DNA of 64,000 nucleotides from Piromyces finnis finn (Eukaryota; Fungi; Neocallimastigomycota): NCBI GenBank assembly GCA_002104945.1, contig MCFH01000015.1:62001-126000 (forward strand). Direction: 5' to 3'. How positions within the stretch are numbered: the first letter of the stretch is position 1; each line of letters begins with the position of its first letter. Positions 9,721 through 64,000 of the stretch are shown here, piece by piece. Under the pieces are notes generated by a model that was given only the letters and a program-made list of their open reading frames with translations, had not been told where the DNA came from and searched no databases. The translations under genes and the position numbers were made by a program.

Positions 9721-10834
9721 CTTATTTTTTATAATTTCTAATTTTCAATTAATAATAAAAAGAAATAAAAAAAAAAAAGTTAAAAAATAAAAATTTTTAA
9801 TAATTTAGTTACACAATTTCATATATAGCAAATTATATAAACTTTAAATTTTTAAATTTTGATATCTAAAAATATTGGGAAATAAAGAAGCATACAACAA
9901 AAAATAAGCCAATTTAAGAATCAATTTTAATATCTTCATGACTGGATCCAACAGAAATTATAAATGCAGAGCCATTAATAGTAATATCACTAAAAGAAAA
10001 AAATTATTCCCAACACTCTTACAATATAGAAATCTAAATATCACGATCATCAGGACCCAAATCCGACCCTCCAAAAACCATGATGTGCTTTTACTAAATC
10101 ATCTACAAAAACCATTTAAATATAAATATATCATAGGTTTTTAAAGCTGTTTATTTCTTTTTTTATAAATAATAAATGATAATTAATAGTTTCTATTTGA
10201 AGATAAAAACCTAATGTTAATGAAAAAAATAAGCATTTATAAAATAATACAAAAAAAAAAAAAAAGCCTATTAATAATAGTAATACTCTTTATGAAATAT
10301 AATTACAAAAAAATAAAAATAGAAAATGAAAAAATCAATAAAAAATAAAAAATAAAATAAATAAAAAAATATAATATTTTAATAAATTTATAGAAATATT
10401 AAAATTACTAGCTCAATATCATTCCAAAAATTCTTTTATTTGTTAAAAAAAAAAAGATAAAGTTGAATTAGAAAAGTTTGAATTGAAGTTGGAAATATAT
10501 AATCTATTGATCTAAAATTAATTTCTCTTACTTTGAATTGACACGCATCATCTCTTCTTTAAAAAAGTTTTTTAAAATAAACAAAATTAAATAATCTAAT
10601 CCTTTATAAGTAAATTAACGAGTACTTGATTATTCACTTTGAAAAAAAATTTTTTTAATGGTTTTGAAACTTTAATATATTAATTATAATTTGGCTGCTG
10701 TTAATTCAAAAAAAATAAATAAAATTAGAAGAATTATAGTAAAATTTAATAAAACTTAAACTAATAAAAAAATGAAAACTATGTAATAACTTTAAAAGAA
10801 AAAACAAGCTACTATTATATTAAATCATATTGAC

Positions 10835-12120
10835 TTTTTTTTTTTTTTAACGGCATCAAATATTTTTAAACTTTATTATTAATTTAATTAAAATGATAAT
10901 ACATGTAATATAAAAAATTAAAAATAAAAATAAAAATTTAAAAAAAAAAAAAATGTTTAAATAAAAACAAATAAATAAAAATTGTGTATATTGTATTCTA
11001 GTAATTTTAATCAAAGTAAGAAAGCCATACTATTATACTAAAGTATAATAATTGCATTTGACTTCCAATAGGACACCAAGTCAAAGATCAAAATTTTGTC
11101 ATGGGACAAAATTATGATCTCCATTGGTTGCGCTGGTCCTCCTGGCCTATCTTACTGTTTCTTCAGCATTGATCTCCACTCTTGCAATATGGACAGTAGT
11201 TAGGATAAACTGGATCAACAAATTTTGCGGCTTTTGCAACTCTAGCATCCAGTTTGTATCTGCTTCTTGTTTTCAATAGTCAGTAGAAACCATTAGACAA
11301 ACTCTGGGTACTTATAACATAATTTAATAAAATCTTTAGTTTCAATGAATTTATTATCATCATAATATTGCGCTTTGATTGAATTCCTTTTGAGATCTTT
11401 CCAATAAAAGTTTTTAACTGCTTTAACATCACCATGCTTCTTTAATTTTTTATCAATTGTCCTACTTGATGTGCACCATGTATATTTTCTAAATTTAGGA
11501 ATCTAATTGACAAGGTATGAGATAATACAATTTGAGTTTTTCTACTTATTAAAATATCTAACCTGGGTTAATGCTCATTTGACTGATAATGGAGGAATAT
11601 TCAAATCTTTTGAAATAGAGTATAAAGATATAAACAATACAGCTTTATGAACTCCAGCAACCCATTGTATTCCTTTGTTAATATGCTTCTGAGCAATCCT
11701 AGACCTAGCTTTGTTGAATCCAAGTAATGGTGCAAAGTATAAAACTCTGCTGATCACTTGTGAATTAAGTACTAGCTTTTTGAAAGAAATGTGAATATTA
11801 GGATTTCTTAAGAATTTGCTGACTAAAAAAAGTCCTTTCAAAACCTTGTTATTAAGAGCTTTAATTACTGGTTTAAGGGGGAAATTCTTATCAAACGGAA
11901 CACCAAAATAAGTGGAATGGGTGTTCCTGCTAAGTAAAATTTTGGATCTTTCTTGTTCTGATTTTCTGCTGATTCAGGACGAATGACCATCGTTGAACAT
12001 TTCTGGATACCAAATTCCATTTCATTATACAAAACCCATTCATTAACTTTTTTTAGCATCTTTTTTAAGCATCTTCTTGAACTATATCATCTACAAAAAG
12101 ACCACCACAGCACCGAATGC
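10835..12120 (-). mobile_element. Decayed, 5'-truncated, internally deleted copy of the same LINE as in the 53-64 kb array
   Basis: Poly(T) at 10835-10848 is followed by AACGGCATCAAATATT, the same 3' end as the array copies. ORF fragments 11575-11841 and 11865-12059 match ORF2 but carry frameshifts and stops. There is an ~600-bp internal deletion near 11172. Confidence 0.92.
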
Positions 12121-12474
12121 TCATACTAACTTTTAACATAACTAGAAACCAAAATGCCACTAAAAATGCCACTAAAAATGGATCACTCAGTTAATGATTA
12201 TTGAATATTTTGATTTTCACACTTACCACATGTACAGTGATTCAAACAAATCAACTCAACTAATTTAGAATGTTGTTTGATTTTAAACTCTAACAACTTT
12301 CAGCTTATAGAATCCACATTAAAACTAATAAAATACAAAATGGTCATATATAATTTATTAAAATTATTTGTTCCATTACAATACTACGCTTTAAATGACT
12401 TTTATATTTTCACTTGCTAAAAAATTATATTACAATCCTAATCCTACTTTATCAATTTTTTAAAAAATAACAAA

Positions 12475-21792: not shown

Positions 21793-24700
21793 AATAATAT
21801 CAAAGATTCAAAACAAAAAAAAAAAAAGAAAAAAGAATAACGAATTATTATAGAAAAGAGAAAGTACAATGAGAAAAAAAAAAAAGAAACAAAGAAATAA
21901 AGAAAAAATAGGAACTTAATAGATGATTACACTTTATATAGCAAATGTTCTTATTTTTCTTTTTAGTTTCACTAATTAATAATGGATCATTGAGTTTTTA
22001 TTATAATAATTTGCATTCTTTCTTTATTAATGTTACTCTTTATTCCTTGCCTCAATGTTTTTTGATGATGATATATATATTAAATAGTAACATAATGGAT
22101 TTATTAATAAAATAATATATATATATTTGTTTTGGATTGTATTGAATATGAAAGGGGAAAAAAAAAAATGCATATAGAGGATATAGAGGACGATTATAGA
22201 AACAAAATTCAATTATACAGAGTAAAAATATAAATATAAATGATTTTATTTTTTAACACGAGTAAAATGGAATTTATATGATGAAATAAGGAAAAAAATT
22301 CTTAAAGATCAAGTAGTTGGGAATAAAATTAAATATTAAAAGTATTTAATTTTTCTTTTTTTATTAATAATTATTACTATTAGGAATAATAGATTTTTAT
22401 CAATAATCAAAATTGAATCAAAAAGACTTGAACATATATATATATTTAATATGAAATATCATAAAATAATGCAAATAATGCAATATAAATATATATATTA
22501 AGAAATTTCATGAGTGAAAATTCAAGTAAAATATAATTATTCAATAAGGATAGAAAAAAAGAACTGTTTTTTTCAACACTTTAAAATACTTTTTTTATGG
22601 AAATGAATGTTACTTTTTAAAATCAGTCTTTTATAATATCTATTAAATGTTTTTCTCTTGTTATTTATTAGTAATTATATAAAAAAAAAAATATCTCTGA
22701 CAGATTGACATTAACTCAAATCAATAATAATGTTGCTAATTGGTAAGCCAGTTCAAGATTATCTTTTTTTTTTTTTTTTGCAATTATAGTTCCACTTTTT
22801 TTTAGTATCCTTTTTTTTCTGTCCATATTTATTTTCTTTTTGACTAAAATACCTAAAAATTAAAATTATTAAATATGCATAAAGTCCTTTTTTTTTTTAT
22901 TTTTCTTTTTTATCTTTTATGTATCAAGTAGTAAAGTCTCTTATTTAAAAAAAAAAATTATAAGAAATTATAAAATTTCTTCTAAACTCGTATAATTATA
23001 TAAAATTGTTTATATTATTCTTTGTTTTCTATCAATAGATGTCTTGTGTCAATATAAAATGGCTATTGTTTGTCCAAAATAATAATAATGAATGTTTTTA
23101 TTTTATATTATTATAATACCAGTAAAAACTATGTTAAAAACTTGTTTTAACATAGAAAGATTTTGCTTAACCCTTTAAAATTTAAATAATTATAAATTAA
23201 ATGGATTAGGTTAGATTTAACAAAAATATAATAATATAAAATTTCCTGTAACATAATTTAAAAAATACAAGTTTTATAATGTGAATGTGAATAGAGCATA
23301 GAACTTTTTTAATTGTAAAAAAAAAAAAAAAAATTACTTATTTAAAAATTACTTATTTCACTTTTATATAACTATAACTATGTTATTTACAATCTAGTAA
23401 TAAAAAATATGCAATAAAATTTTTAGTATGAATAAATGCCAATATAATACAATGAATCATACCTTTTTTTTAATTTTAAATATAACCCTTTATTTTATAA
23501 TTTCGCGCTTTTATCCATTATAATAACTATTTATAAATAATAACTCTATAATTAATATATAATAAAATTATTAACACTATATATATATATTTTAAAAAAA
23601 GAGAGTAATACCCTATATTATTATTTGATATATTATTAATTGATAGTGGTCAATGTTCAAAAAAAATTAAAACAACAATCGGTCAATACTAAAGAAACAA
23701 TAAAACAGGTTAGGCTAGTATAATCAATGGAATTCTATTTCTTGATGCTGAATCCCATTGGTAGTTGAATACAATTATTATATTTATGTGTAGTAGTAAT
23801 ATTTTTTAATTAAACTTACTAGGAATACATTATATGTCCATTTTTTTATTCATTTTGTGCTTAAATTTATTTTTGAAATTTTCATTCCATTATATTAAAT
23901 TTATTTTTAAATACATATGTATAATAATATTAAACAAAATAAAAGTTTTTAATATATATCTTGTAAGTTTTTTATTTATTTGAATAGCTTTAATTATTTT
24001 TATTTCTAATTGATCTTTTTTATTATTATTACACATTTTATATTTTACACCGTATTGTATTATAATAATTTATATTTATATTTTTGAATGGCTTTCTATA
24101 TCTAATATTTTATGGCAAATGCATTAAAAATCATATTTTATTTCATATATATTGATAGTGAACCTACGACTGTCTTTTTGACTATTTTTTTTCAAGTTTT
24201 TAATTAAATTAAATAATAATTATTAAGAACCAAATATGGTAATAATCATAATTGTTATATTTTCAATAATTATAAAAAATTAACTTTATATTATCAACAT
24301 TTATATATATATTTAATATATTTCAACATATTATTATAAAATGAATTAATAAGTTAATATATGAAATATATTGAATACTAATACTATTTCAATATATTAA
24401 CAAAAATTGATTTTATTTTTAATTTTTTTTTGGTATAACCTTTATATTATTATTATTATAATCTAATATATTAGTTTAATTAAATCATCTATATTAAAAT
24501 TATTTTAATGTCATGTAATGAAATTTAATATAATAAACTATATTTCAATATATGATGGCTTTTATTATTTAAATACAATTTGTATTGTGTAATCCTAATA
24601 ATGATTTTTAATAAAATTAATCTATTTTTTAAATGATAAATTAAATTTAATATATAAATTAATATTTTTATAGTTGGTGGTTTTTTTATTATCTTTTTTT

Positions 24701-27184: not shown

Positions 27185-30072
27185 TATTTTCCAATTCTAT
27201 GATTATTAATATAATATAAATGATACAAATATAAATTTATATTTTGTGCTGTTTTAAAAAAACAAAAACAAAAAAAAATGTATATATATACTTAATATCA
27301 AATATTTTATTAATTAATATAAAAAGCTATTCTTTTTGAAAACAAGAGACCGGCTATGAAGGGAAAGGTTTTACATCCAGATTTCGAAAAACTTATTACT
27401 AATTGTTGGAATAAGAATGTTTCTAAGAGACCAACTATTGATGAAATTATTAAAATTTTAAGTAATTTAATGCAAGAAGAAGAAGTTTTTAAGACTGAAG
27501 TTTTAAATAAATTTGATACTATGCCAACTCAACATGAATTAAAAATTAAGGAACAAGAATTAAGAAAAGAACAAGAATTAAAGAAGGAACAAGAACTTCA
27601 AAAGGAAATAATGGAAAAACCAAAATTAAAGCCAATTGAATCAAATTCATCACCAGAATTGACAGAACAACAAAATGAATCTGAACCACAACCAGAAGAA
27701 GAAACTGAATTACCAGAAGCTACTGAAGTTTCAGAATTACCAAAGGCTTCAGAAGAACCAGTTGAATATTCAGAATTACCAAATGAAGAAGAAATCAAGA
27801 GTCCAGTTATTAATGAAATTTCAGAAACCCCAGAATTAAAGGAAGATGAAGTAGAAGAAGAAATGAATGAAAAAGAAGAAGAAATTAATATTGAAGAATC
27901 AACAAAGGAAGAAGAAGAAAAGGAAGAAATAAAGAAAGATGAAAATATTGTAAATGTTAAGAAGGCTAATGATGAAAAGAAGGATAGATATGCTTTAGAG
28001 CAAAGCAGAAGAGAACAAGAGTAAGTATCATATTGATAAGTTAAATAATATATATATATTTAAATTCTGTATAAAAACTTTTAAGAAAGACAATTTTAAA
28101 AATAAAAATTTAATCATGATGTATTAATAACAATATATTCCTACCATTGCTATAAAGGTACTTATTAAGAGAACAAGAAGAACGTGAACGTCATAAGATT
28201 AGAGAAGCTTTATTAAGACAATTAGAACTTAATAAGGCTGAAGCTGCTAGACAAAGAGAATTAGAAAAAATTGAACTTACTAAGCAAAAGGAAAAAGAAG
28301 CTTTTGAAAAGATTGAAAAGGCAAAGAATATCCTTTTAGAAAAGGAAAAAGAAAAATTAAAGAAAGAACAAGAGGAACGTGAAATTGAATTACAAAGACA
28401 AGAAGAAATCAAGAAACAATGGGAAATTTCCCAACAAAAGACCAAAGAATTAGAAAGAAAGAAGGAAGAGGAAAGATTAAAGAAGGAACAAGAGAAATTA
28501 TTAAAGATTAAACAAGAAGAAGAAGAAAACTTCCAAAAAACTTTAAAGGCTAAGGAAATTGAAGAAAAGAAAATTCAACAAAGAAAAGAAGAAGAATTAA
28601 GAAAGAAGAATGAACAAGAATTAAATATTGCTAAACAAAGAAAAATTCAAGAAGAAAAGTTAAAGGAATTTGAACAAAAGAAGAAGGAAGCTCAATTAAA
28701 GGAAAAACAAAAGAAGGAAGAAGAAGAAAAGAAGAGAAATGAAGAAGCCATGAATAGAATTCTTTTAGCTAAAAAGAAGTTAGAAGCTAAGGAAAAGAAG
28801 GTTATTGTTGATGAAGAAAATCAAAATACTTTAAATCTTATTAATAGCAATAACATGGATAGAAAGGCTATTTCTGATTTTGAAAAGAAGAGATTAGAAA
28901 TGTTAAAGGAAAAGGAAAAGAATCGTCAAATGAATATCGCTAAAAATGAAGATTTTGCCTTCCAAAAGGCTTTTGCTACTAAAAAGAGAATTGAAGAAAA
29001 AGAAAGTCAACGTAAAAAGGAAGAAGAAATAAAGAAGGAACAAGCTATCAATCGTGATAAAGAAAAGGTTGAAAAGTGGAAGGAACAAAAGAAGAAGTTT
29101 GAAGCTCTTGAAGAAGAAAGAAGAAGAATTCGTAATGGTGGTGTCAACCAAGATACTGGTTTCCTTTTCAATAACGGTCGTGTTTCACCATCTGTTGTTG
29201 CTAACCGTTCAAAGTTTGAAGCTCTCGAAGAAGAAAGAAGAAGAATTCGTGAAGCTGGTGTCAACCAAGATACCGGTTTCCTTTTCAATAACGGTCGTGT
29301 TTCCCCATCTGTTGTTGCTAATCGTTCAAAGTTTGAAGCTCTCGAAGAAGAAAGAAGAAGAATTCGTGAAGCTGGTGTCAACCAAGATACCGGTTTCCTT
29401 TTCAATAACGGTCGTGTTTCCCCATCTGTTGTTGCTAATCGTTCAAAGTTTGAAGCTCTCGAAGAAGAAAGAAGAAGAATTCGTGAAGCTGGTGTTAACC
29501 AAGATACTGGTTTCCTTTTCAATAACGGTCGTGTTTCACCATCCATTGGTCAAATTAATCGTGCTAAATTTGAAGCTCTTGAAGAAGAAAGAAGAAAAAT
29601 CCGTGAAGCTGGTGTTAACAAAGATACAGGTTTCCTTTTCAATAATGGCCGTGTCTCTCCTGTTTCAAACCGTGCTAATTTCTTTAAACAAAAGAGCGAT
29701 TCTGACAGTAATCAAATACGTTCTAACTCTCCACAATTCTATCGTCCATCTTCTCCATCTTTTAGATCTGCTTCTCCAACCCCATCTAATTCTTCTGTTA
29801 CCTCTTCATCAAGTCAGTACACTTATAAACTTCGTTCCACAAATTTAAAAGATTTTGAACAACGTAAATTGGAAAAACAACGTGAACAAGAACGTCAACG
29901 TCGTGAATTACAAAAACAACAAGAACAAGAAGCTTTCCAAAAACTTCTTAATGCCAAAAAGAAGATTAGTGAAATTGAAGCTCGTAAGAAGAGAGATCAA
30001 GAAGATCGTAAGAAAATTAATCAAAATGGACTTAATGATTTCAGAAGTTCAACTGAAGAAATTGAAGAGTGA
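26224..30072 (+). CDS. TKL-like protein kinase (atypical motifs) with an acidic linker, long coiled coil and tandem-repeat tail
   Basis: Exons 26224-26535, 26692-27112, 27327-28020 and 28158-30072. Kinase motifs: ALIK, DYFEDGNLQEY, LPWKKRYEIA, HHDLKISNI, DYG, DIYSLG, CWNKNVSKRPT. Confidence 0.85.
29095..29679 (+). repeat. Five 117-nt (39-aa) tandem coding repeats KFEALEEERRRIREAGVNQDTGFLFNNGRVSPSVVANRS
   Basis: Units start at 29095, 29212, 29329, 29446 and 29563; units 2-4 are nearly identical at the DNA level. Confidence 0.95.
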
Positions 30073-48683: not shown

Positions 48684-48951
<268 letters not shown>

Positions 48952-49367: not shown

Positions 49368-49439
49368 CTCCGCACCGGGGAATCGAACCCCGGCCGCCGC
49401 GGTGAGAGCGCGGAATCCTAGCCACTGGACCAGTGCGGA
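49368..49439 (-). tRNA. tRNA-Glu(CTC), 72 nt, intronless
   Basis: TCCGCAC/GTGCGGA acceptor stem, CCGCG-CT-CTC-AC-CGCGG anticodon arm, GGTTCGATTCC B box, followed by a T-run. Confidence 0.96.
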
Positions 49440-51863: not shown

Positions 51864-52015
51864 CCTAAAACTATTCTAAACTAAACTAACCTAAACTAAA
51901 ACTAAAACTAAAACTAAAATAAAATAAAACTAAAATAAAATAAAATAAAACTAAAATAAAATAAAACTAAAATAAAATAAAATAAAACTAAAATAAAATA
52001 AAATAAAACTAAAAT
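51864..52015. repeat. Degenerate (CTAAA/CTAAAA/TAAAA)n repeat
   Basis: Reads ...CTAAACTAAACTAACCTAAACTAAAACTAAAACTAAAACTAAAATAAAATAAAAC... directly in the sequence. Confidence 0.85.
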
Positions 52016-52265: not shown

Positions 52266-52337
52266 TCCGCATTGGTCCAGTGGCTAGGATTCCACGCTCT
52301 CACCGTGGCGGCAGGGGTTCGATTCCCCTATGCGGAG
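52266..52337 (+). tRNA. tRNA-Glu(CTC), 72 nt, second isodecoder
   Basis: TCCGCAT/ATGCGGA acceptor stem, CCACG-CT-CTC-AC-CGTGG anticodon arm, GGTTCGATTCC B box, ATTTTT terminator. Confidence 0.96.
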
Positions 52338-52933
52338 TTCATTTTTCTATTAACTTAATAAAAATGTTTTCCTATTTTTTTTTTAAACAAAAAAGAAAAT
52401 ACTTTTTTTATTTAAAATAAAACAAAACAATTATTTAAGTTGCATAAATATTCAATGAATTCTGATTTTTATACTGTGTGGGATTGATCTCTTCCTAAAA
52501 AATTAATTGAAATAAAAAAGGAAAGTAACATCAGGTGTGGTCGTATGGTGCCTACTAAACTCTCCCATGAACTCATAATGTCTCCATTCGAAGAAATATT
52601 AACATTGAACTTCATATTCGGAACATTAATAATGTCCCTTTGCCATATAAGTACGACAGTCGGCACTCTTGATTATATTAGGTGTTTTACTAAACTTAAC
52701 ATGAACAAACACGAGGGCCGTCAGGAATAATTCTATTACTCGCAATAGAAATTAAGGTAGTGTTTTCATAACCGCATCGGATACGAATAATCTAAGTAAT
52801 TCTTAAATTTAAGTAAGATTTATTGAGACCAATATGCATTGGGCGATTTGAATTAAAGAATTTGCTGTTAGTATTTCTGAGGGCTTTACTTCCATTATTA
52901 AGGCTACTATTATTACATTAATGTCCTATAATA

Positions 52934-53060
52934 TGACCTATCTTACTGTTTCTTTAGCATAGATGCTCTTGGTTGTTGCTTAAAACCTTTAAAACATTGT
53001 CCATTGTTGGTAGTAGAAACCATAGGCAGATTCTGGGTGCTTATAGAACAATTTAATAAA
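52934..53060 (-). pseudogene. Small, highly decayed remnant of the LINE ORF2 3' region with an ~660-bp internal deletion
   Basis: CCTATCTTACTGTTTCTTTAGCATAGATGCTCTTGG...CATTGTCCATTG aligns by eye to about 53343-53416. AGTAGAAACCATAGGCAGATTCTGGGT...AATTTAATAAA aligns to about 54078-54126. Confidence 0.75.
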
Positions 53061-55135
53061 TTTTTTTTTTTTTTTTTTTAGCGGCATCAAATATTTTTAA
53101 ATTTTATTATTAAAATTATAATAAAAAATAAAAATAAAAATAAAAAAAAATATGTTTAAATAAATACAAATGAATAAAAATTGGGTATAATGTATTCTAG
53201 TAATTTTAATTAAAGTAAGAAAGCCACTATCATACTAAAGTATAATAATTGTATTTGACTTCCAATGGGACACCGAGCCAAAGACCAAAATTTTGTCATG
53301 GAACAAAATTATGATCTCCATTGGTTGCGCTGGCCCTCCTGGCCTGTCTTACTGTTTCTTCAGCATTGACGCTCTTGGATGTTGCTTCAAACCTTTTGAA
53401 CATTGACCATTGCTGGCCAATAGCAAAAGGCATGATTTTGGTTAGAAGTTCCGCGGTTACCGTCAAGAATGGTGTTCCTTCGTTAGTACCAGATTGAATC
53501 TGACGCTTACAAAGTTCTTTCCATTCCCTTGAATTGTAATTAATATTGTTAAAACTTCTTCCCCCAAGAAGGAATTTAAATATTTTACTGCACACACTAG
53601 AATAATCATACACATTAATATTCACCGGATTATTAGAACTATTACTATCATTAACTAAATTACTATCTAAATTAGAATTATTATCTTCACTATTGCTATC
53701 ATTACTAATATTATTATTTCTATTATTGTTATTATTACTATTGTTACTATTACTATTGTTACTATTACTATTGTTATTACTACTATTGTTACTATTACTA
53801 TTAATGTTATTACTATCTCTACTGATATTATCAATTTCATTATTATTGATAGGACTATTGGAATTACGTTGGCTGAAAAAAATTAATAGCTGGACTATAG
53901 AATCATAATGTTTAATACGGATATCTCTAAATGTTGGACAATCTAATAACCAATGTTTAATACTTTGATCTCCACACTTGCAACATGGACAGTAGTTAGG
54001 ACAAACTGGATCAACAAATTTGGCAGCTTTGGCAACTCTAGCATCCAACTTGTATCCGCTTCTTGCTTTCAATAGCCAGTAGAAGCCATAGGCAAACTCT
54101 GGGTACTCATAACATAATTTAATAAAATCTTTAGTTTCAATAAATTTATTATCATCATAATATTGCGCTTTGATTGAATTCCTTTTGAGATCTTTCCAAT
54201 AAAAGTTTTTAACTGCTTTAACATCTCCATGTTTCTTTAATTTTTTTTCAAGTGTCCTACTTGATTTGCACCACGTGTATTTTCTAAATTTAGGAATGTA
54301 ATTGACAAGGTGTGAGATAATACAATTTGAGTTTTTCCATTTGTTAAAACATCTAACCTGAGCTAACGCACATTTGGCTGACAATGGAGGAATATTCAAA
54401 TCTTTTGAAATAGAGTATAAAGATATAAACGATACAGCTTTATGAACTCCGGCAACCCATCGTATTCCTTTGTTAACATGCTTCTGAGCAATCCTAGACC
54501 TAGCTTTGTTGGATCCAAGTAATGGTGCAAAGTATGAAACTCTGCTAATCACTTGTGAGTTAAGTACTAGTTTTTTGAAAGGAATAGGAATATTAGGATT
54601 TCTTAAGAATTTACTGACTGAGAAAAGCCCTTTCAAAACTTTGTTATTAAGAGCTTTAATTACTGGTTTAAGGGACAGATTCTTATCAAATGGAACACCA
54701 AGATAAGTATAGCAATCAGTAGTTGGAATGGGTTGTCCTGCTAAGTAAAATGTTGGATCTCTCTTGTTCTGATTTTCTATTGATTCAGGACGAATCACCA
54801 TCGTTGAACATTTCTGGATACCAAATTCCATTTCATTATACAATGCCCATTCATTAACTCTTCTAAGCATCTTTTTTAAGCATCCTCTTGTTGGAGCACA
54901 AATAACTATATCATCTGCAAAAAGTCCACCACAGCATCGAGTGTCACCTAAACTGACTCCTAGATCTTCGCACTCTCTAAATATATCATTAATAAAGAGA
55001 TTAAAGAGAATAGGAGAAAGAGGGCAACCTTGACGGACTCCTTTCTTCACATCAAAAGATTTCGAGAATTGTCCATCTAATTTGACATTAGCCTTAGATG
55101 TTAAATATAAATTTTTGATAAATTGTAGACTCTTA

Positions 55136-55137
<2 letters not shown>
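53061..55137 (-). mobile_element. LINE copy A (RTE/RTEX-like), 5'-truncated, about 2.06 kb plus A19 tail
   Basis: Poly(T) at 53061-53079, then the 3' UTR and open ORF2 C-terminus. It ends at 55137 (AGACTCTTACC), abutting the poly(T) of the next copy. Confidence 0.95.
53296..55050 (-). CDS. ORF2 fragment of copy A (RT C-terminal half, CCHC-like knuckle, Asn tract)
   Basis: ORF track: GVRQGCPLSP, LFADD, CPCCKCGDQSIKHWLLDC; the frame stays open up to the truncation point. Confidence 0.85.
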   Translation of the reverse strand: MKKGVRQGCPLSPILFNLFINDIFRECEDLGVSLGDTRCCGGLFADDIVICAPTRGCLKKMLRRVNEWALYNEMEFGIQKCSTMVIRPESIENQNKRDPTFYLAGQPIPTTDCYTYLGVPFDKNLSLKPVIKALNNKVLKGLFSVSKFLRNPNIPIPFKKLVLNSQVISRVSYFAPLLGSNKARSRIAQKHVNKGIRWVAGVHKAVSFISLYSISKDLNIPPLSAKCALAQVRCFNKWKNSNCIISHLVNYIPKFRKYTWCKSSRTLEKKLKKHGDVKAVKNFYWKDLKRNSIKAQYYDDNKFIETKDFIKLCYEYPEFAYGFYWLLKARSGYKLDARVAKAAKFVDPVCPNYCPCCKCGDQSIKHWLLDCPTFRDIRIKHYDSIVQLLIFFSQRNSNSPINNNEIDNISRDSNNINSNSNNSSNNNSNSNNSNSNNSNNNNNRNNNISNDSNSEDNNSNLDSNLVNDSNSSNNPVNINVYDYSSVCSKIFKFLLGGRSFNNINYNSREWKELCKRQIQSGTNEGTPFLTVTAELLTKIMPFAIGQQWSMFKRFEATSKSVNAEETVRQARRASATNGDHNFVP

Positions 55138-55176
<39 letters not shown>

Positions 55177-57477
55177 GGCATCAAATATTTTAAACTTTAT
55201 TATTAATTTAATTAAAATTATAATACATGTAATATAATAATTAAAATAAAATAAAAATAAAAAAAAATATGTTTAAATAAACACAAATGAATAAAAATTG
55301 GGTATAATGTATTCTAGTAATTTTAATTAAAGTAAGAAAGCCACTATCATACTAAAGTATAATAATTGTATTTGACTTCCAATGGGACACCGAGCCAAAG
55401 ATCAAAATTTTATCATGGAACAAAATTATGATCTCCATTGGTTGCGCTGGCCCTCCTGGCCTGTCTTACTGTTTCTTCAGCATTGACGCTCTTGGATGTT
55501 GCTTCAAACCTTTTGAACATTGACCATTGCTGGCCAATAGCAAAAGGCATGATTTTGGTTAGAAGTTCCGCGGTTACCGTCAAGAATGGTGTTCCTTCAT
55601 TAGTACCAGATTGAATCTGACGCTTACAAAGTTCTTTCCATTCCCTTGAATTGTAATTGATATTGTTAAAACTTCTTCCCCCAAGAAGGAATTTAAATAT
55701 TTTACTGCACACACTAGAATAATCATACACATTAATATTCACCGGATTATTAGAACTATTACTATCATTAACTAAATTACTATCTAAATTAGAATTATTA
55801 TCTTCACTATTGCTATCATTACTAATATTATTATTTCTATTACTACTATTGTTATTATTACTATTTCTATTATTACTATTACTACTATTGTTATTATTAC
55901 TATTGTTATTATTACTATTGTTACTATTACTATTAATATTATTACTATCTCTACTGATATTATCAATTTCATTATTATTGATAGGACTATTGGAATTACG
56001 TTGACTGAAAAAATTTAATAGCTGGACTATGGAATCATAATGTTTAATACGGATATCTCTAAATGTTGGACAATCTAATAACCAATGTTTAATACTTTGA
56101 TCTCCACACTTGCAACATGGACAGTAGTTAGGACAAACTGGATCAACAAATTTGGCAGCTTTGGCAACTCTAGCATCCAACTTGTATCCGCTTCTTGCTT
56201 TCAATAGCCAGTAGAAGCCATAGGCAAACTCTGGGTACTCATAACATAATTTAATAAAATCTTTAGTATCAATAAACTTATTATCATCATAATATTGCGC
56301 TTTGATTGAATTCCCTTTGAGATCTTTCCAATAAAAGTTTTTAACTGCTTTAACATCTCCATGTTTCTTTAGTTTTTTATCAAGTGTCCTACTTGATTTG
56401 CACCACGTGTATTTTCTAAATTTAGGAATGTAATTGACAAGGTGTGAGATAATACAATTTGAGTTTTTCCATTTGTTAAAACATCTAACCTGAGCTAACG
56501 CACATTTGGCTGACAATGGAGGAATATTCAAATCTTTTGAGATAGAGTATAAAGATATAAACGATACAGCTTTATGAACTCCGGCAATCCATCGTATTCC
56601 TTTGTTAACATGCTTCTGAGCAATCCTAGACCTAGCTTTGTTGGATCCAAGTAATGGTGCAAAGTATGAAACTCTGCTAATCACTTGTGAGTTAAGTACT
56701 AGCTTTTTGAAGGGAATAGGAATATTAGGATTTCTTAAGAATTTACTGACTGAGAAAAGCCCTTTCAAAACCTTGTTATTAAGAGCTTTAATAACTGGTT
56801 TAAGGGACAGATTCTTATCAAATGGAACACCAAGATAAGTATAACAATCAGTAGTTGGAATGGGTTGTCCTGCTAAGTAAAATGTTGGATCTCTCTTGTT
56901 CTGATTTTCTATTGATTCAGGACGAATCACCATCGTTGAACATTTCTGGATACTAAATTCCATTTCATTATACAATGCCCATTCATTAACTCTTCTAAGC
57001 ATCTTTTTTAAGCATCCTCTTGTTGGAGCACAAATAACTATATCATCTGCAAAAAGTCCACCACAGCATCGAGTGTCACCTAAACTGACTCCAAGATCTT
57101 CGCACTCTCTAAATATATCATTAATAAAGAGATTAAAGAGAATAGGAGAAAGAGGGCATCCTTGACGGACTCCTTTCTTCACATCAAAAGATTTCGAGAA
57201 TTGTCCATCTAATTTGACATTAGCCTTAGATGTTAAATATAAATTTTTAATAAATTGTAAACTCTTACCTCGGATTCCTAAACAATCTAATTTATGGAGA
57301 ATATTACCGATTGGGACTGAATCGTATGCTTTCCTGAGATCTAAAAAGGCCAAATATGTCTCTTTATTATCTAATTGACGTCTACGGCATATTTCTTGGA
57401 TTGAAATGAAAAGACTAATACTTTCTTCCTTTTTTCGAAAACCAAATTGTTCAGGTCTAATGAAATTATTCTTTAAA
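55138..57477 (-). mobile_element. LINE copy B, 5'-truncated, about 2.30 kb plus A36 tail
   Basis: Poly(T) at 55138-55173; homology to copies C and D ends at 57477 (TTCTTTAAA). Confidence 0.95.
55413..57353 (-). CDS. ORF2 fragment of copy B (reverse transcriptase)
   Basis: ORF track: AFLDLRKAYDSV, QGCPLSP, LFADD; no stops. Confidence 0.85.
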   Translation of the reverse strand: MAFLDLRKAYDSVPIGNILHKLDCLGIRGKSLQFIKNLYLTSKANVKLDGQFSKSFDVKKGVRQGCPLSPILFNLFINDIFRECEDLGVSLGDTRCCGGLFADDIVICAPTRGCLKKMLRRVNEWALYNEMEFSIQKCSTMVIRPESIENQNKRDPTFYLAGQPIPTTDCYTYLGVPFDKNLSLKPVIKALNNKVLKGLFSVSKFLRNPNIPIPFKKLVLNSQVISRVSYFAPLLGSNKARSRIAQKHVNKGIRWIAGVHKAVSFISLYSISKDLNIPPLSAKCALAQVRCFNKWKNSNCIISHLVNYIPKFRKYTWCKSSRTLDKKLKKHGDVKAVKNFYWKDLKGNSIKAQYYDDNKFIDTKDFIKLCYEYPEFAYGFYWLLKARSGYKLDARVAKAAKFVDPVCPNYCPCCKCGDQSIKHWLLDCPTFRDIRIKHYDSIVQLLNFFSQRNSNSPINNNEIDNISRDSNNINSNSNNSNNNNSNNNNSSNSNNRNSNNNNSSNRNNNISNDSNSEDNNSNLDSNLVNDSNSSNNPVNINVYDYSSVCSKIFKFLLGGRSFNNINYNSREWKELCKRQIQSGTNEGTPFLTVTAELLTKIMPFAIGQQWSMFKRFEATSKSVNAEETVRQARRASATNGDHNFVP

Positions 57478-57512
57478 TAATTTTACTTTAGACATATTAA
57501 AATCACTTGTTT

Positions 57513-57514
<2 letters not shown>

Positions 57515-57544
<30 letters not shown>

Positions 57545-60500
57545 GGCATCAAATATTTTAAACTTTATTATTAATTTAATTAAAATTATAATACATGTAA
57601 TATAAAAATTAAAATAAAATAAAAATAAAAAAAATATGTTTAAATAAACACAAATGAATAAAAATTGGGTATAATGTATTCTAGTAATTTTAATTAAAGT
57701 AAGAAAGCCACTATCATACTAAAGTATAATAATTGTATTTGACTTCCAATGGGACACCGAGCCAAAGATCAAAATTTTGTCATGGAACAAAATTATGATC
57801 TCCATTGGTTGCGCTGGCCCTCCTGGCCTGTCTTACTGTTTCTTCAGCATTGACGCTCTTGGATGTTGCTTCAAACCTTTTGAACATTGACCATTGCTGG
57901 CCAATAGCAAAAGGCATGATTTTGGTTAGAAGTTCCGCGGTTACCGTCAAGAATGGTGTTCCTTCGTTAGTATCAGATTGAATCTGACGCTTACAAAGTT
58001 CTTTCCATTCCCTTGAATTGTAATTAATATTGTTAAAACTTCTTCCCCCAAGAAGGAATTTAAATATTTTACTGCACACACTAGAATAATCATACACATT
58101 AATATTCACCGGATTATTAGAACTATTACTATCATTAACTAAATTACTATCTAAATTAGAATTATTATCTTCACTATTGCTATCATTACTAATATTATTA
58201 TTTCTATTATTGTTATTATTACTATTGTTACTATTACTATTGTTACTATTACTATTGTTATTACTACTATTGTTACTATTACTATTAATGTTATTACTAT
58301 CTCTGCTGATATTATCAATTTCATTATTATTGATAGGACTATTGGAATTACGTTGACTGAAAAAATTTAATAGCTGGACTATAGAATCATAATGTTTAAT
58401 ACGGATATCTCTAAATGTTGGACAATCTAATAACCAATGTTTAATACTTTGATCTCCACACTTGCAACATGGACAGTAGTTAGGACAAACTGGATCAACA
58501 AATTTGGCAGCTTTGGCAACTCTAGCATCCAACTTGTATCCGCTTCTTGCTTTCAATAGCCAGTAGAAGCCATAGGCAAACTCTGGGTACTCATAACATA
58601 ATTTAATAAAATCTTTAGTTTCAATAAATTTATTATCATCATAATATTGCGCTTTGATTGAATTCCCTTTGAGATCTTTCCAATAAAAGTTTTTAACTGC
58701 TTTAACATCTCCATGTTTCTTTAGTTTTTTATCAAGTGTCCTACTTGATTTGCACCACGTGTATTTTCTAAATTTAGGAATGTAATTGACAAGGTGTGAG
58801 ATAATACAATTTGAGTTTTTCCATTTGTTAAAACATCTAACCTGAGCTAACGCACATTTGGCTGACAATGGAGGAATATTCAAATCTTTTGAGATAGAGT
58901 ATAAAGATATAAACGATACAGCTTTATGAACTCCGGCAACCCATCGTATTCCTTTGTTAACATGCTTCTGAGCAATCCTAGACCTAGCTTTGTTGGATCC
59001 AAGTAATGGTGCAAAGTATGAAACTCTGCTAATCACTTGAGAGTTAAGTACTAGTTTTTTGAAAGGAATAGGAATATTAGGATTTCTTAAGAATTTACTG
59101 ACTGAGAAAAGCCCTTTCAAAACCTTGTTATTAAGAACTTTAATTACTGGTTTAAGGGACAGATTCTTATCAAATGGAACACCAAGATAAGTGTAGCAGT
59201 CAGTAGTTGGAATGGGTTGTCCTGCTAAGTAAAATGTTGGATCTCTCTTGTTCTGATTTTCTATTGATTCAGGACGAATCACCATCGTTGAACATTTCTG
59301 GATACCAAATTCCATTTCATTATACAAGGCCCATTCATTAACTCTTCTAAGCATCTTTTTTAAGCATCCTCTTGTTGGAGCACAAATAACTATATCATCT
59401 GCAAAAAGTCCACCACAGCATCGAGTGTCACCTAAACTAACTCCGAGATCTTCACACTCTTTAAATATATCATTAATAAAGAGATTAAAAAGAATAGGCG
59501 AAAGTGGGCATCCTTGACGGACTCCTTTCTTCACATCAAAAGATTTCGAGAATTGTCCATCTAATTTGACATTAGCCTTAGATGTTAAATATAAATTTTT
59601 GATAAATTGTAGACTCTTACCTCGGATTCCTAAACAATCTAATTTATGGAGAATATTACCGATTGGGACTGAATCGTATGCTTTCCTGAGATCTAAAAAG
59701 GCCAAATATGTCTCTTTATTATCTAATTGACGTCTACGGCATATTTCTTGGATTGAAATGAAAAGACTAATACTTTCTTCCTTTTTTCGAAAACCAAATT
59801 GTTCAGGTCTAATGAAATTATTCTTTAAACCATATTCTGAGATTCTAGTGGTGACAATTTTGGAGATCAACTTAATACCATTATTGATAAGTGATATACC
59901 TCGATAGTTATCACAATCTGTCAAATCTCCCTTCTTAGGAATAGAAACAATACTGGATTCATTCCATGAGTTGGGGAAATCTCCATCCCAAATACGGTTG
60001 AATAATTTAAGAATAAAATTTAAACCATGAGCATCATTATCTGAAGTAGTATTACCAGAAGAATTATTACCTGTAGCATTATTAGAATCATTACTTGATG
60101 GAATTAATGCTTTGTAAAATTCAATTGGAATACCATCCGGACCTGATGCTTTATAATTTGGAGTAGAGAGGATAGCTGACTTGACTTCATCAATACTAAT
60201 ATCTTGGTTGATATCCCACTCATCAAGCATAGGAAGTGAAAAACGTTTATTCATTGGTTCTTCATACCAATGCTCCAAATCAAGACTTACACCACTTGGA
60301 TCTGATGCAAGCTTTTCGAAATGATCATGCCACACATCTAGTTGTTCTTCCGTAGCAACAACTAATTCTCCATTTTTATTTTTAATTGGTTGAGCAATAA
60401 AGAAAGAATCTTTTCCAATTTTTGCAGTTTTCTTGATCCATTTCCAGGCCTTCTTAGGATTATGACTCTTCATATACTCACATCCTGTTTTAATCCAATG

Positions 60501-60629
60501 AAGATATTCTTGCTTCCTAAATTCATTACATCTTTTGTGGATGTAATCAATGAGCTTACGGTAGATTTTAATTCTTTTAATAAATTCATCTATATCATAA
60601 ATTCTTTCTTTTTTAAATCTCTTATACAA
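57515..60629 (-). mobile_element. LINE copy C, 5'-truncated, about 3.09 kb plus A27 tail
   Basis: Poly(T) at 57515-57541; homology to copy D ends at 60629 (CTTATACAA). Confidence 0.95.
57780..60629 (-). CDS. ORF2 fragment of copy C (complete RT domain)
   Basis: ORF track, 949 aa: KASGPDGIP, KKGDLTDCDNYRGISL, PEQFGFR, FLDLRKAYDSV, QGCPLSP, FADD. Confidence 0.88.
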   Translation of the reverse strand: MYKRFKKERIYDIDEFIKRIKIYRKLIDYIHKRCNEFRKQEYLHWIKTGCEYMKSHNPKKAWKWIKKTAKIGKDSFFIAQPIKNKNGELVVATEEQLDVWHDHFEKLASDPSGVSLDLEHWYEEPMNKRFSLPMLDEWDINQDISIDEVKSAILSTPNYKASGPDGIPIEFYKALIPSSNDSNNATGNNSSGNTTSDNDAHGLNFILKLFNRIWDGDFPNSWNESSIVSIPKKGDLTDCDNYRGISLINNGIKLISKIVTTRISEYGLKNNFIRPEQFGFRKKEESISLFISIQEICRRRQLDNKETYLAFLDLRKAYDSVPIGNILHKLDCLGIRGKSLQFIKNLYLTSKANVKLDGQFSKSFDVKKGVRQGCPLSPILFNLFINDIFKECEDLGVSLGDTRCCGGLFADDIVICAPTRGCLKKMLRRVNEWALYNEMEFGIQKCSTMVIRPESIENQNKRDPTFYLAGQPIPTTDCYTYLGVPFDKNLSLKPVIKVLNNKVLKGLFSVSKFLRNPNIPIPFKKLVLNSQVISRVSYFAPLLGSNKARSRIAQKHVNKGIRWVAGVHKAVSFISLYSISKDLNIPPLSAKCALAQVRCFNKWKNSNCIISHLVNYIPKFRKYTWCKSSRTLDKKLKKHGDVKAVKNFYWKDLKGNSIKAQYYDDNKFIETKDFIKLCYEYPEFAYGFYWLLKARSGYKLDARVAKAAKFVDPVCPNYCPCCKCGDQSIKHWLLDCPTFRDIRIKHYDSIVQLLNFFSQRNSNSPINNNEIDNISRDSNNINSNSNNSSNNNSNSNNSNSNNSNNNNNRNNNISNDSNSEDNNSNLDSNLVNDSNSSNNPVNINVYDYSSVCSKIFKFLLGGRSFNNINYNSREWKELCKRQIQSDTNEGTPFLTVTAELLTKIMPFAIGQQWSMFKRFEATSKSVNAEETVRQARRASATNGDHNFVP

Positions 60630-60680
60630 AGAAGTGGCTTATGGTCTGATACAGGATAAAAATTATTTATAAATGATCCT

Positions 60681-60683
<3 letters not shown>

Positions 60684-60728
<45 letters not shown>

Positions 60729-63700
60729 GGCATCAAATATTTTAAACTTTATTATTAATTTAATTAAAATTATAATACATGTAATATAAAAATTAAAATA
60801 AAATAAAAATAAAAAAATATGTTTAAATAAACACAAATGAATAAAAATTGGGTATAATGTATTCTAGTAATTTTAATTAAAGTAAGAAAGCCACTATCAT
60901 ACTAAAGTATAATAATTGTATTTGACTTCCAATGGGACACCGAGCCAAAGATCAAAATTTTGTCATGGAACAAAATTATGATCTCCATTGGTTGCGCTGG
61001 CCCTCCTGGCCTGTCTTACTGTTTCTTCAGCATTGACGCTCTTGGATGTTGCTTCAAACCTTTTGAACATTGTCCATTGCTGGCCAATAGCAAAAGGCAT
61101 GATTTTGGTTAGAAGTTCCGCGGTTACCGTCAAGAATGGTGTTCCTTCGTTAGTATCAGATTGAATCTGACGCTTACAAAGTTCTTTCCATTCCCTTGAA
61201 TTGTAATTAATATTGTTAAAACTTCTTCCCCCAAGAAGGAATTTAAATATTTTACTGCACACACTAGAATAATCATACACATTAATATTCACCGGATTAT
61301 TAGAACTATTACTATCATTAACTAAATTACTATTTAAATTAGAATTATTATCTTCACTATTGCTATCATTATTAATATTATTATTTCTATTACTACTATT
61401 GTTATTATTACTATTTCTATTATTACTATTACTACTATTGTTATTATTACTATTGTTATTATTATTATTGTTACTATTACTATTACTGTTATTACTATCT
61501 CTACTGATATTATCAATTTCATTATTATTGATAGGACTATTGGAATTACGTTGACTGAAAAAATTTAATAGCTGGACTATAGAATCATAATGTTTAATAC
61601 GGATATCTCTAAATGTTGGACAATCTAATAACCAATGTTTAATACTTTGATCTCCACACTTGCAACATGGACAGTAGTTAGGACAAACTGGATCAACAAA
61701 TTTGGCAGCTTTGGCAACTCTAGCATCCAACTTGTATCCGCTTCTTGCTTTCAATAGCCAGTAGAAGCCATAGGCAAACTCTGGGTACTCATAACATAAT
61801 TTAATAAAATCTTTAGTTTCAATAAATTTATTATCATCATAATATTGCGCTTTGATTGAATTCCCTTTGAGATCTTTCCAATAAAAGTTTTTAACTGCTT
61901 TAACATCTCCATGTTTCTTTAATTTTTTATCAAGTGTCCTACTTGATTTGCACCACGTGTATTTTCTAAATTTAGGAATGTAATTGACAAGGTGTGAGAT
62001 AATACAATTTGAGTTTTTCCATTTGTTAAAACATCTAACCTGAGCTAACGCACATTTGGCTGACAATGGAGGAATATTCAAATCTTTTGAAATAGAGTAT
62101 AAAGATATAAACGATACAGCTTTATGAACTCCGGCAACCCATCGTATTCCTTTGTTAACATGCTTCTGAGCAATTCTAGACCTAGCTTTGTTGGATCCAA
62201 GTAATGGTGCAAAGTATGAAACTCTGCTAATCACTTGTGAGTTAAGTACTAGTTTTTTGAAAGGAATAGGAATATTAGGATTTCTTAAGAATTTACTGAC
62301 TGAGAAAAGCCCTTTCAAAACCTTGTTATTAAGAGCTTTAATTACTGGTTTAAGGGACAGATTCTTATCAAATGGAACACCAAGATAAGTATAGCAATCA
62401 GTAGTTGGAATGGGTTGTCCTGCTAAGTAAAATGTTGGATCTCTCTTGTTCTGATTTTCTATTGATTCAGGACGAATCACCATCGTTGAACATTTCTGGA
62501 TACCAAATTCCATTTCATTATACAAGGCCCATTCATTAACTCTTCTAAGCATCTTTTTTAAGCATCCTCTTGTTGGAGCACAAATAACTATATCATCTGC
62601 AAAAAGTCCACCACAGCATCGAGTGTCACCTAAACTGACTCCTAGATCTTCGCACTCTTTAAATATATCATTAATAAAGAGATTAAAGAGAATAGGAGAA
62701 AGAGGGCATCCTTGACGGACTCCTTTCTTCACATCAAAAGATTTCGAGAATTGTCCATCTAATTTGACATTAGCCTTAGATGTTAAATATAAATTTTTGA
62801 TAAATTGTAGACTCTTACCTCGGATTCCTAAACAATCTAATTTATGGAGAATATTACCGATTGGGACTGAATCGTATGCTTTCCTGAGATCTAAAAAGGC
62901 CAAATATGTCTCTTTATTATCTAATTGACGTCTACGGCATATTTCTTGGATTGAAATGAAAAGACTGATACTTTCTTCCTTTTTTCGAAAACCAAATTGT
63001 TCAGGTCTAATGAAATTATTCTTTAAACCATATTCTGAGATTCTAGTGGTGACAATTTTGGAAATCAACTTAATACCATTATTGATAAGTGATATACCTC
63101 GATAGTTATCACAATCTGTCAAATCTCCCTTCTTAGGAATAGAAACAATACTGGATTCATTCCATGAGTTGGGGAAATCTCCATCCCAAATACGGTTGAA
63201 TAATTTAAGAATAAAATTTAAACCATGAGCATCATTATCTGAAGTAGTATTACCAGAAGAATTATTACCTGTAGCATTATTAGAATCATTACTTGATGGA
63301 ACTAATGCTTTGTAAAATTCAATTGGAATACCATCCGGACCTGATGCTTTATAATTTGGAGTAGTGAGGATAGCTGACTTGACTTCATCAATACTAATAT
63401 CTTGGTTGATATCCCACTCATCAAGCATAGGAAGTGAAAAACGTTTATTCGTTGGTTCTTCATACCAATGCTCCAAATCAAGACTTACACCACTTGGGTC
63501 TGATGCAAGATTTTCGAAATGATCATGCCACACATCTAGTTGTTCTTCCGTAGCAACAACTAATTCTCCATTTTTATTTTTAATTGGTTGAGCAATAAAG
63601 AAAGAATCTTTTCCAATTTTTGCAGTTTTCTTGATCCATTTCCAGGCCTTCTTAGGATTATGACTCTTCATATACTCACATCCTGTTTTAATCCAATGAA

Positions 63701-64000
63701 TATATTCTTGCTTCCTAAATTCATTACATCTTTTGTGGATGTAATCAATGAGTTTACGGTAGATTTTAATTCTTTTAATAAATTCATCTATATCATAAAT
63801 TCTTTCTTTTTTAAATCTCTTATACAACTTCATTTTGATTTTTTGAAGATTAAAAATTTGTTGTGAAATATGAAATGAAGACATTATAACATTATTTGCT
63901 GAAGTAATACTGAGCTCGTCTGCAATTGAAAAAGCAGTTGAAGTAAACTCTTTGGAAAGTTCATCTGTAGAAACATTAGGATCGTTGGATTTTGCTGAAA
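60684..64000 (-). mobile_element. LINE copy D, at least 3.27 kb plus A42 tail; 5' part runs off the window
   Basis: Poly(T) at 60684-60725; AATAAA lies about 25 nt upstream of the tail on the sense strand; the ORF is open to the window edge. Confidence 0.95.
60963..64000 (-). CDS. ORF2 of copy D (RT plus C-terminal zinc knuckle); any endonuclease domain would lie beyond the window
   Basis: ORF track 60963-63884 (973 aa). The frame remains open upstream (SAKSNDPNVSTDELSKEFTSTAFSIADELSITSANNVIM). KKGDxxxCxNYRGISL and PEQFGFR resemble RTE/RTEX-clade RT. Confidence 0.88.
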   Translation of the reverse strand, partial: SAKSNDPNVSTDELSKEFTSTAFSIADELSITSANNVIMSSFHISQQIFNLQKIKMKLYKRFKKERIYDIDEFIKRIKIYRKLIDYIHKRCNEFRKQEYIHWIKTGCEYMKSHNPKKAWKWIKKTAKIGKDSFFIAQPIKNKNGELVVATEEQLDVWHDHFENLASDPSGVSLDLEHWYEEPTNKRFSLPMLDEWDINQDISIDEVKSAILTTPNYKASGPDGIPIEFYKALVPSSNDSNNATGNNSSGNTTSDNDAHGLNFILKLFNRIWDGDFPNSWNESSIVSIPKKGDLTDCDNYRGISLINNGIKLISKIVTTRISEYGLKNNFIRPEQFGFRKKEESISLFISIQEICRRRQLDNKETYLAFLDLRKAYDSVPIGNILHKLDCLGIRGKSLQFIKNLYLTSKANVKLDGQFSKSFDVKKGVRQGCPLSPILFNLFINDIFKECEDLGVSLGDTRCCGGLFADDIVICAPTRGCLKKMLRRVNEWALYNEMEFGIQKCSTMVIRPESIENQNKRDPTFYLAGQPIPTTDCYTYLGVPFDKNLSLKPVIKALNNKVLKGLFSVSKFLRNPNIPIPFKKLVLNSQVISRVSYFAPLLGSNKARSRIAQKHVNKGIRWVAGVHKAVSFISLYSISKDLNIPPLSAKCALAQVRCFNKWKNSNCIISHLVNYIPKFRKYTWCKSSRTLDKKLKKHGDVKAVKNFYWKDLKGNSIKAQYYDDNKFIETKDFIKLCYEYPEFAYGFYWLLKARSGYKLDARVAKAAKFVDPVCPNYCPCCKCGDQSIKHWLLDCPTFRDIRIKHYDSIVQLLNFFSQRNSNSPINNNEIDNISRDSNNSNSNSNNNNNNNSNNNNSSNSNNRNSNNNNSSNRNNNINNDSNSEDNNSNLNSNLVNDSNSSNNPVNINVYDYSSVCSKIFKFLLGGRSFNNINYNSREWKELCKRQIQSDTNEGTPFLTVTAELLTKIMPFAIGQQWTMFKRFEATSKSVNAEETVRQARRASATNGDHNFVP

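Follow-up and report, generated by a model that had tools for sequence, protein, structure and literature searches.

A head-to-tail chain of four young L1-like retrotransposons in Piromyces finnis, possibly built by serial template jumping

At the right-hand end of a 64,000-nucleotide stretch of Piromyces finnis DNA (assembly GCA_002104945.1, contig MCFH01000015.1, positions 62,001 to 126,000; hereafter the window, with positions counted from its first letter), four copies of one family of long interspersed nuclear elements (LINEs), here called family 1, are joined head to tail on the minus strand. It is most likely that these copies, A to D, possibly with more past the window, represent one unresolved retrotransposition intermediate and not four separate endonuclease-initiated insertions. 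As to how the chain was made, we tentatively favor serial template jumping, or a relay that primes repeatedly from a single free cDNA end, with a confidence that stays just short of even. We favor this reading because of the complete tails at the joints, the missing target-site duplications (TSDs), the single orientation, the sense patches and internal skips, and the equal ages of the copies. The chain comprises the following features, and its 5' end lies past the window end at position 64000:

53061 to 55137, minus strand: copy A of family 1, about 2.08 kb, A19 tail, 5'-truncated within the reverse transcriptase (RT) region, 614 open codons.
55138 to 57477 (body; to 57514 with its 5' patch), minus strand: copy B of family 1, about 2.38 kb, A36 tail, 688 open codons.
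57478 to 57514 (37 nt), minus strand, sense: 5' patch of B, of which 29 nt correspond to the GDFN-motif region of the endonuclease, plus 8 extra nt at 57507 to 57514.
57515 to 60629 (body; to 60683 with its 5' patch), minus strand: copy C of family 1, about 3.17 kb, A27 tail, 950 open codons.
60630 to 60683 (54 nt), minus strand, sense: 5' patch of C, all 54 nt corresponding to the SDH-motif region of the endonuclease.
60684 to past 64000, minus strand: copy D of family 1, at least 3.32 kb, A42 tail, with 1012 codons open as far as the end of the window.

Sequence reading and BLAST both place the same element 3' end after each of the four poly(T) runs on the plus strand (53061-53079, 19 nt; 55138-55173, 36 nt; 57515-57541, 27 nt; 60684-60725, 42 nt). 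The original prediction for this DNA, which had claimed four same-strand copies with tails of 19, 36, 27 and 42 A, was thereby reproduced, and the same holds for its open frames, given that none of the copies has an internal stop between its 5' end and the natural stop. Across the 2.06 kb common to all four, pairwise identity is 98.0-98.7%. Copy D is probably full length, with full-length copies at other loci measuring 5.7-6.2 kb. As had also been claimed, no TSD was seen around A, B or C, nor between any parts of the array, by sequence reading or BLAST. The steady increase in length from A to D that had been pointed out is real, yet an order like this would arise by chance in roughly 1 in 12 to 1 in 24 cases; no mechanism for such a rise is at hand.

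For comparison, we used a set of eleven other LINE loci (L008-L019), the seven longer of which total approximately 150 kb. Two of these, L015 and L016, are other P. finnis contigs with full-length family-1 copies and served as references for mapping the patches. The open reading frame (ORF) of family 1 contains an RT domain (RVT_1, E 9e-36), and the element carries GDFN and SDH endonuclease motifs; its protein homologs, which come from Neocallimastigomycota, carry PF03372 (exo-endo-phosphatase), and on the L016 copy the Pfam endonuclease model scored below threshold. An annotated protein matching at 98% likewise identifies the genome as P. finnis, and an origin from Dictyostelium, which the AT-richness and the tRNA gene had suggested, was rejected in view of this match and of the homologs. 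Of the solved relatives, human L1 ORF2p is the best match (E 2e-33), with R2 at E 3e-18. A Cys/His-rich C-terminal stretch of the translation, CPNYCPCCKCGDQSIKHWLLDCP, is read as a putative CCHC-type knuckle, and the domain order together with the best solved match points to an L1-like element (apurinic endonuclease-like domain (APE), RT and CCHC). Presumably, the presence of this knuckle and the best match to L1 speak against the label RTE/RTEX for family 1. In L016, the start of the endonuclease (L016:2840-3184) overlaps the main ORF of 1221 amino acids (L016:3130-6795) in a separate frame, which may be either a frameshift of that copy or a feature of the family. The 5' end of family 1, as seen in L016, is made of tandem monomers of approximately 124 bp.

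The joints of the array follow one order everywhere, namely a complete poly(A) tail, LINE-derived sense sequence and a truncated copy. All parts are in sense and directly fused, which includes A to D, both endonuclease patches and the older pieces Y and Z that adjoin the array on its left (listed below). The parts have 0-2 nt in common at their joints: the tail of B directly abuts the 5' end of A with 1 nt in common, 2 nt are common to C and its patch, which is out of frame with C, and a single joint, adjoining the tail of C, holds the 8 extra nt. The 29 nt of the B patch match L016 3410-3438 and L015 7699-7727 at 100% (blastn) and in the sense frame encode QTSDFNMSKVKL, where homologs read GDFNLSTEKL; the body of B restarts at L016 4740, 1301 nt downstream of the patch, corresponding to a skip of approximately 1.3 kb. 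Likewise, the 54 nt of the C patch match L016 3579-3632 and L015 7868-7921 at 100% (blastn) and encode SGSFINNFYPVSDHKPLL, with the SDH motif, and the body of C restarts at L016 3940, 307 nt downstream of the patch (a skip of approximately 0.3 kb). Neither the 37-nt nor the 54-nt patch occurs a second time within the window. One gut-metagenome contig holds both, 194 nt apart, which is the spacing expected of an intact endonuclease region, and reads of other copies continue uninterrupted on either side of 60629/60630. Judging from the sequence, B and C are truncated copies, each with a short 5' sense patch and an internal skip. The claim that the internal joints differ thus stands with regard to truncation points, patches and tails, which are unlike one another, but the sequences at the joints are not foreign, as they are patches from the element's own endonuclease region. 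A possible origin of the patches as flank or TSD remnants of serial tRNA-directed insertions was ruled out by their 100% identity to the endonuclease region of full-length copies. It should also be noted that a 7-bp snap-back is possible at the joint between C and its patch, which may be chance.

The variable sites among the four copies show how these relate to one another. Sites private to one copy number 15 in B, 13 in A, 10 in C and 6 in D, and the shared sites fall into the partitions AC|BD (11), AB|CD (3) and AD|BC (2). Neighboring copies are therefore not duplicates of each other, and the alternation of shared sites (AC|BD) is incompatible with unit amplification, in line with the earlier statement that the array is not a simple amplification of one unit. 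A part of the ORF that is rich in Asn and Ser and of low complexity (53640-53850, 55750-55980, 58120-58330 and 61300-61500) occurs in two length and sequence variants, one in A and C, the other in B and D, with identities of 99% and 98% within the pairs and approximately 90% between them; thus, these variants, too, alternate along the array. Private changes within the ORF comprise 12 non-synonymous and 25 synonymous ones, a ratio that argues for selection before insertion and for an origin of most of these changes in active lineages. With two extra full-length copies added, singleton rates amount to 0.16-0.42% per copy, without significant difference. These patterns indicate that A to D come from four active source lineages and that all four copies are young, with indistinguishable ages.

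Elsewhere, solo copies of family 1 carry clear TSDs of 11-37 bp; their lack in the array is hence not a property of the family as such. The full-length copy in L015 is flanked by an 11-bp TSD (TTTCTTAAAAA), the full-length copy in L016 by one of 36-37 bp, and a 29-nt family-1 copy in L016 by one of 11 bp (GTTAGTTTGTT). None of the three TSD-bearing insertions lies in an A-tract, their primer ends are not T-rich, and the nicks are at non-T sites. The tails differ as well: family-1 tails abutting a target have lengths of 9, 14, 18, 19, 23 and 25 (n = 6), and every one of the internal tails (27, 36 and 42; n = 3) exceeds every one of these (exact rank test, 1/84). B, C and D each start from a complete 3' untranslated region (UTR) and a tail of 27-42 A. 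The long internal tails fit template jumping, because a jump onto the 3' end of an RNA copies the whole tail.

To the left of copy A, the array is continued by older pieces, which lead up to a tRNA gene. These are listed together with a second tRNA gene and a solo family-1 copy elsewhere in the window:

52934 to 53060, minus strand: Z, two sense patches derived from a family-1-like element and located at the 5' end of Y, lacking both a 3' UTR and a tail of its own.
52385 to 52924, minus strand: Y, an old, 5'-truncated and degenerate LINE of a second family (family 2), A10 tail at 52385 to 52394.
52338 to 52384 (47 nt), no strand assigned: spacer, in which the tRNA gene has its TTTTT terminator; sense TAGGAAAACATT... 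(read directly).
52266 to 52337, plus strand: tRNA-Glu(CUC) gene (ARAGORN; Rfam RF00005 at 59.5 bits), with the LINE pile wholly downstream of it.
49368 to 49439, minus strand: second tRNA-Glu(CUC) gene, differing at several stem positions from the gene at 52266 to 52337.
10835 to 12127, minus strand: E, an older solo family-1 copy of approximately 91% identity, A14 tail, internal deletion of approximately 600 nt.

In correction of the original prediction, the sequence left of A is not unique flank but older LINE debris of the same orientation. In tblastn comparisons, Y is 55-62% identical to the C-terminal regions of P0027, P0049 and P0018; its frame changes twice and holds a single in-frame stop. 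In blastn comparisons with L016, it matches 10456-10682 at 87% and 11050-11269 at 80.5%, and it lacks 367 nt that are present in the family-2 copy of L016; its 3' end resembles the family-2 end of L013 and L016. The tail of Y starts 47 nt downstream of the tRNA-Glu gene at 52266-52337, and the tail of copy A is 723 bp away from that gene. Within Z, the patch 52934-53010 corresponds to the C-terminus of the ORF and the patch 53011-53060 to a region about 0.7 kb further upstream. Z is 84-89% identical to copies A-D and to L015 and L016 (blastn); its translation reads FIKLFYKHPESAYGFYY / QQWTMF*RF*ATTKS, with two stops, and its first nucleotides in sense are TTTATTAAATTG.... Altogether, the LINE pile beside the tRNA-Glu gene comprises six or more members, drawn from two families and all in one orientation (minus), with all 3' ends toward the tRNA gene. 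Y with the Z patches shows the same skip-and-patch style as the array and may record a comparable event that took place beside the tRNA gene at an earlier time.

The two tRNA-Glu(CUC) genes are in divergent orientation, 2.8 kb apart. The differences between their acceptor and T-stems look compensatory, which suggests that both genes are functional. Two repeat tracts, neither of them telomere-type, were observed close by: a (CTAAAA)n/(TAAAA)n microsatellite at 51870-52015, 250 bp upstream of the tRNA gene that adjoins the LINE pile, and a 260-bp (ATT)n run at 48690-48950 near the other tRNA gene.

Serial template jumping would account for the array as follows. A nick in the old LINE debris (Z/Y) that begins 47 nt downstream of the tRNA-Glu gene would prime reverse transcription, and 2.06 kb of one LINE RNA would be copied to give A. 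The 3' end of this cDNA would then move to the poly(A) 3' end of another LINE RNA, giving B, and not to the upstream DNA, either because the same RT jumps or because a second LINE particle takes over the cDNA end. The same would be repeated for C and D, with two brief stop-overs on pieces of LINE RNA that left the GDFN and SDH patches. Chimeras that are joined exclusively in sense are a signature of RNA-templated joining (PMC13174262, PMC2104539), and we infer that RNA templates were used at the joints, all within one event. Template jumping had been the first of the options offered in the original prediction, and the sense patches, the missing TSDs, the long internal tails and the indistinguishable ages lead us to favor it as well.

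Several points weigh against this proposal. If D is full length, the chain requires at least 13.7 kb of cDNA and at least 6 template changes; a relay by further particles would ease the problem of cDNA length but is unproven. In addition, four different source RNAs must meet in one event. The samples are small, with tails compared between 3 and 6 copies and patches in 3/4 against 0/3, and a preference for long resident tails as targets would equally yield long internal tails. A single TSD, predicted around the whole chain, is unseen, the 5' end of the array being past 64000. Finally, the joints are not confirmed by reads, as these came in the form of Logan contigs, which break at the poly(T) runs and showed no strain polymorphism.

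Template jumping of the kind proposed has precedents. In vitro, R2 proteins jump between templates and so yield tandem products, and their use in human cells gives junctions of the types "tandem insertion" and "extra template" as well as internally gapped ones (PMC11371274). These R2 products, obtained in vitro and by PRINT, resemble the array in joining a 3' end to a full-length or truncated 5' end, in their extra-template patches and internal gaps, and in having little or no homology at the joints (PMC11371274). However, the R2 system is engineered, specific to a site in the rDNA, equipped with a restriction-like endonuclease and used with short templates, whereas the array consists of four long copies of a natural L1-like APE LINE, which come from different source lineages and have complete poly(A) tails at their joints. 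Chimeric retrocopies made by LINEs are a second parallel: double template jumps by a fungal LINE gave the tripartite MGL chimeras of Magnaporthe (PMC2104539), and L1 forms sense chimeras with U6, U3, Alu or mRNA by template switching (PMC13174262). Like the array, they are direct fusions of sense cDNAs with the 5'-truncated LINE part on the 3' side (PMC13174262, PMC2104539). In contrast to the array, they combine a LINE with a small or cellular RNA and usually have two or three parts; in the array, the acceptors are other LINE RNAs, used at their poly(A) end, repeatedly and on a kilobase scale.

The strongest rival is a series of independent insertions, each starting from a nick inside a resident copy's poly(A) tail, with a pure-A TSD that would be invisible; the order of arrival would be free, and D or a copy further upstream may have come first. 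We regard this as unlikely but in need of serious consideration. L1 and Alu are well known to insert into existing A-rich tails of poly(A) retroelements, and the outcome resembles the array in that tandem copies of the same orientation arise whose TSDs are hidden in A-runs. Indeed, tail insertion yields the same orientation and the same joints as observed, all tails of the array could hold an 11-bp TSD, and the 6 non-synonymous singletons of D, compared to 2 in C, would suit an older D. Furthermore, L016 shows family 1 landing repeatedly in or near LINEs of the same orientation, with five same-orientation LINE pieces within 11 kb. These pieces are separated by TSDs or unique spacers, of which the non-LINE ones (73 and 75 nt) gave no matches, and the cluster looks like ordinary neighboring insertions. 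At L016:965-8170, the full-length and the 29-nt family-1 copy both sit within the 5' leader of a further LINE, whose orientation they share.

Tail insertion in L1 and Alu, however, needs an endonuclease and a priming step that favor T-rich sites, whereas the three TSD-bearing insertions of family 1 were nicked elsewhere, at non-T sites and without use of A-tracts. Moreover, pure A/T runs of at least 19 nt are common outside LINEs; the 53 kb to the left of the array contain 9. A plain preference for A-tracts therefore cannot account for three hits in one array, and a further attractor would be demanded. Splitting a resident tail can only shorten it, but the internal tails are longer than the solo ones, and subtraction of an 11-nt TSD from A19 would leave at most 8 nt for the tail of that copy itself. 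Lastly, tail insertion gives no reason for the clustering of patches at the joints of the array. Thus, of the repeated targeting of one site, which had been offered as a third option, the sequential insertion into tails survives at the strength given above, but the frequency of A/T runs speaks against plain A-tract preference.

A different form of repeated targeting would be tRNA-directed integration, in which new copies arrive at a set distance downstream of the tRNA-Glu gene and push older ones outward, building a chronological stack. This would correspond to TRE3 of Dictyostelium, which inserts 14-305 bp downstream of tRNA genes; TRE-type tRNA targeting has been called unique to dictyostelids (PMC5006619). 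The likeness consists in LINE 3' ends that point at a tRNA gene and lie downstream of it, with the first tail 47 nt away, which is the geometry of TRE3. It gains weight from the rarity of tRNA genes, as the two in the window are the only ones in about 210 kb of gut-fungus DNA and none were found at the L008-L019 loci, including the approximately 150 kb of longer ones. Across the dozen loci seen, we roughly estimate at approximately 0.5% the probability that a LINE tail would by chance fall 47 nt downstream of a tRNA gene and be oriented as in TRE3.

Nevertheless, we consider such a stack improbable, and strict tRNA targeting of family 1 is not supported. Y, the member closest to the tRNA gene, is the most decayed and not the youngest, and the tail of A lies 723 bp off. 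If every nick were made at one set distance, neighbors should be separated by copies of a TSD, of which none are seen. TRE3 copies are always near tRNA genes, whereas here only Y, at 47 nt, is, and most copies examined are not: no tRNA gene is within reach of E or of the family-1 copies at L015 and L016, which together make up four spots when the two sites in L016 are counted apart, and the related elements in L008-L014 and L017-L019 also lack one. For E, this was established by ARAGORN and Rfam scans of the window, which gave no tRNA gene near it. Its deletion covers the low-complexity region and part of the C-terminus of the ORF, and its candidate TSD, matching in 8/10 nt, is ambiguous. The young copies of the array, moreover, are at least 0.7 kb from the tRNA gene, behind older debris. 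That the oldest member, Y, lies next to a tRNA gene by chance is unlikely, and we take this adjacency as a real but unexplained lead, which probably concerns the position of the first nick. Our literature search found neither tRNA-linked LINEs in anaerobic fungi nor a tRNA-directed non-LTR (long terminal repeat) element outside dictyostelids.

An assembly artefact, a nested insertion or a tandem duplication of a unit is very improbable. The element is highly repeated (very high depth) and reads did not bridge the poly(T) runs, which would suit an artefact, but every joint is unique in truncation point, patch and tail length, and each copy has private variants, which collapse or expansion of repeats cannot create. 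A unit duplication conflicts with the AC|BD alternation. Nested insertion was rejected, since the order of the two patches does not fit a single copy that was split, and 5' remainders are missing from the places where nesting predicts them; this agrees with the earlier remark that the array is not visibly nested.

The telomeric elements HeT-A, TART and TAHRE of Drosophila and GilM and GilT of Giardia form polar head-to-tail arrays, primed on a free DNA 3' end and without TSDs. Addition at a terminus, or the healing of a chromosome end, in this telomere-like style, the second option of the original prediction, would suit an array that is polar, with 3' ends inward and no TSDs, but is hardly credible here: those arrays are found at chromosome ends, replacing or flanking telomeres, whereas the present one is internal, with 53 kb of ordinary gene-bearing DNA to its left, an end on LINE debris and a tRNA gene in place of a terminus, and no telomere-type repeats anywhere in the window. 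The template-jumping reading still includes the extension of a free 3' end at an internal site.

Further searches for related sequences yielded little. A metagenome scan for related loci gave 7 element-sized contigs, all without flanks, and a protein search with the RT region gave no additional P. finnis models. Within the window, 110 nt at 23753-23863 (plus strand in sense, opposite in orientation to the array) are 80% identical to the 3' UTR of family 1 and may be the LINE-derived tail of a short interspersed nuclear element (SINE). Separately, four to five tandem 117-bp repeats were observed at 29095-29665, within the ORF 28750-30072.

Template jumping by the RTs of LINEs is known mainly in vitro and from engineered systems, and natural cases are mostly two-part chimeras with small RNAs. 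If the template-jumping reading is true, a chain of four LINEs with intact ORFs on a kilobase scale shows the reach of this activity in a living genome. It would also reveal a one-step route to tandem repeat arrays and a mechanistic link between ordinary retrotransposition and telomere-style end extension. A wider form of the idea, which is speculative and which we consider rather unlikely, holds that polar LINE arrays are a regular feature of this fungus: a free DNA 3' end, often nicked tens of bp downstream of a tRNA gene, would be extended repeatedly by LINE particles that prime on poly(A), in a HeT-A-like, telomerase-style relay at internal sites, and the anchoring at tRNA genes would be a convergent, TRE3-like targeting newly evolved in fungi. 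If this free-end relay is true, long polar arrays would be records of single or few events. The tRNA adjacency, if general in the genome, would make this the first tRNA-directed non-LTR element found outside dictyostelids. With its long-read assembly and abundant young copies, P. finnis is suited to a genome-wide census of both questions.

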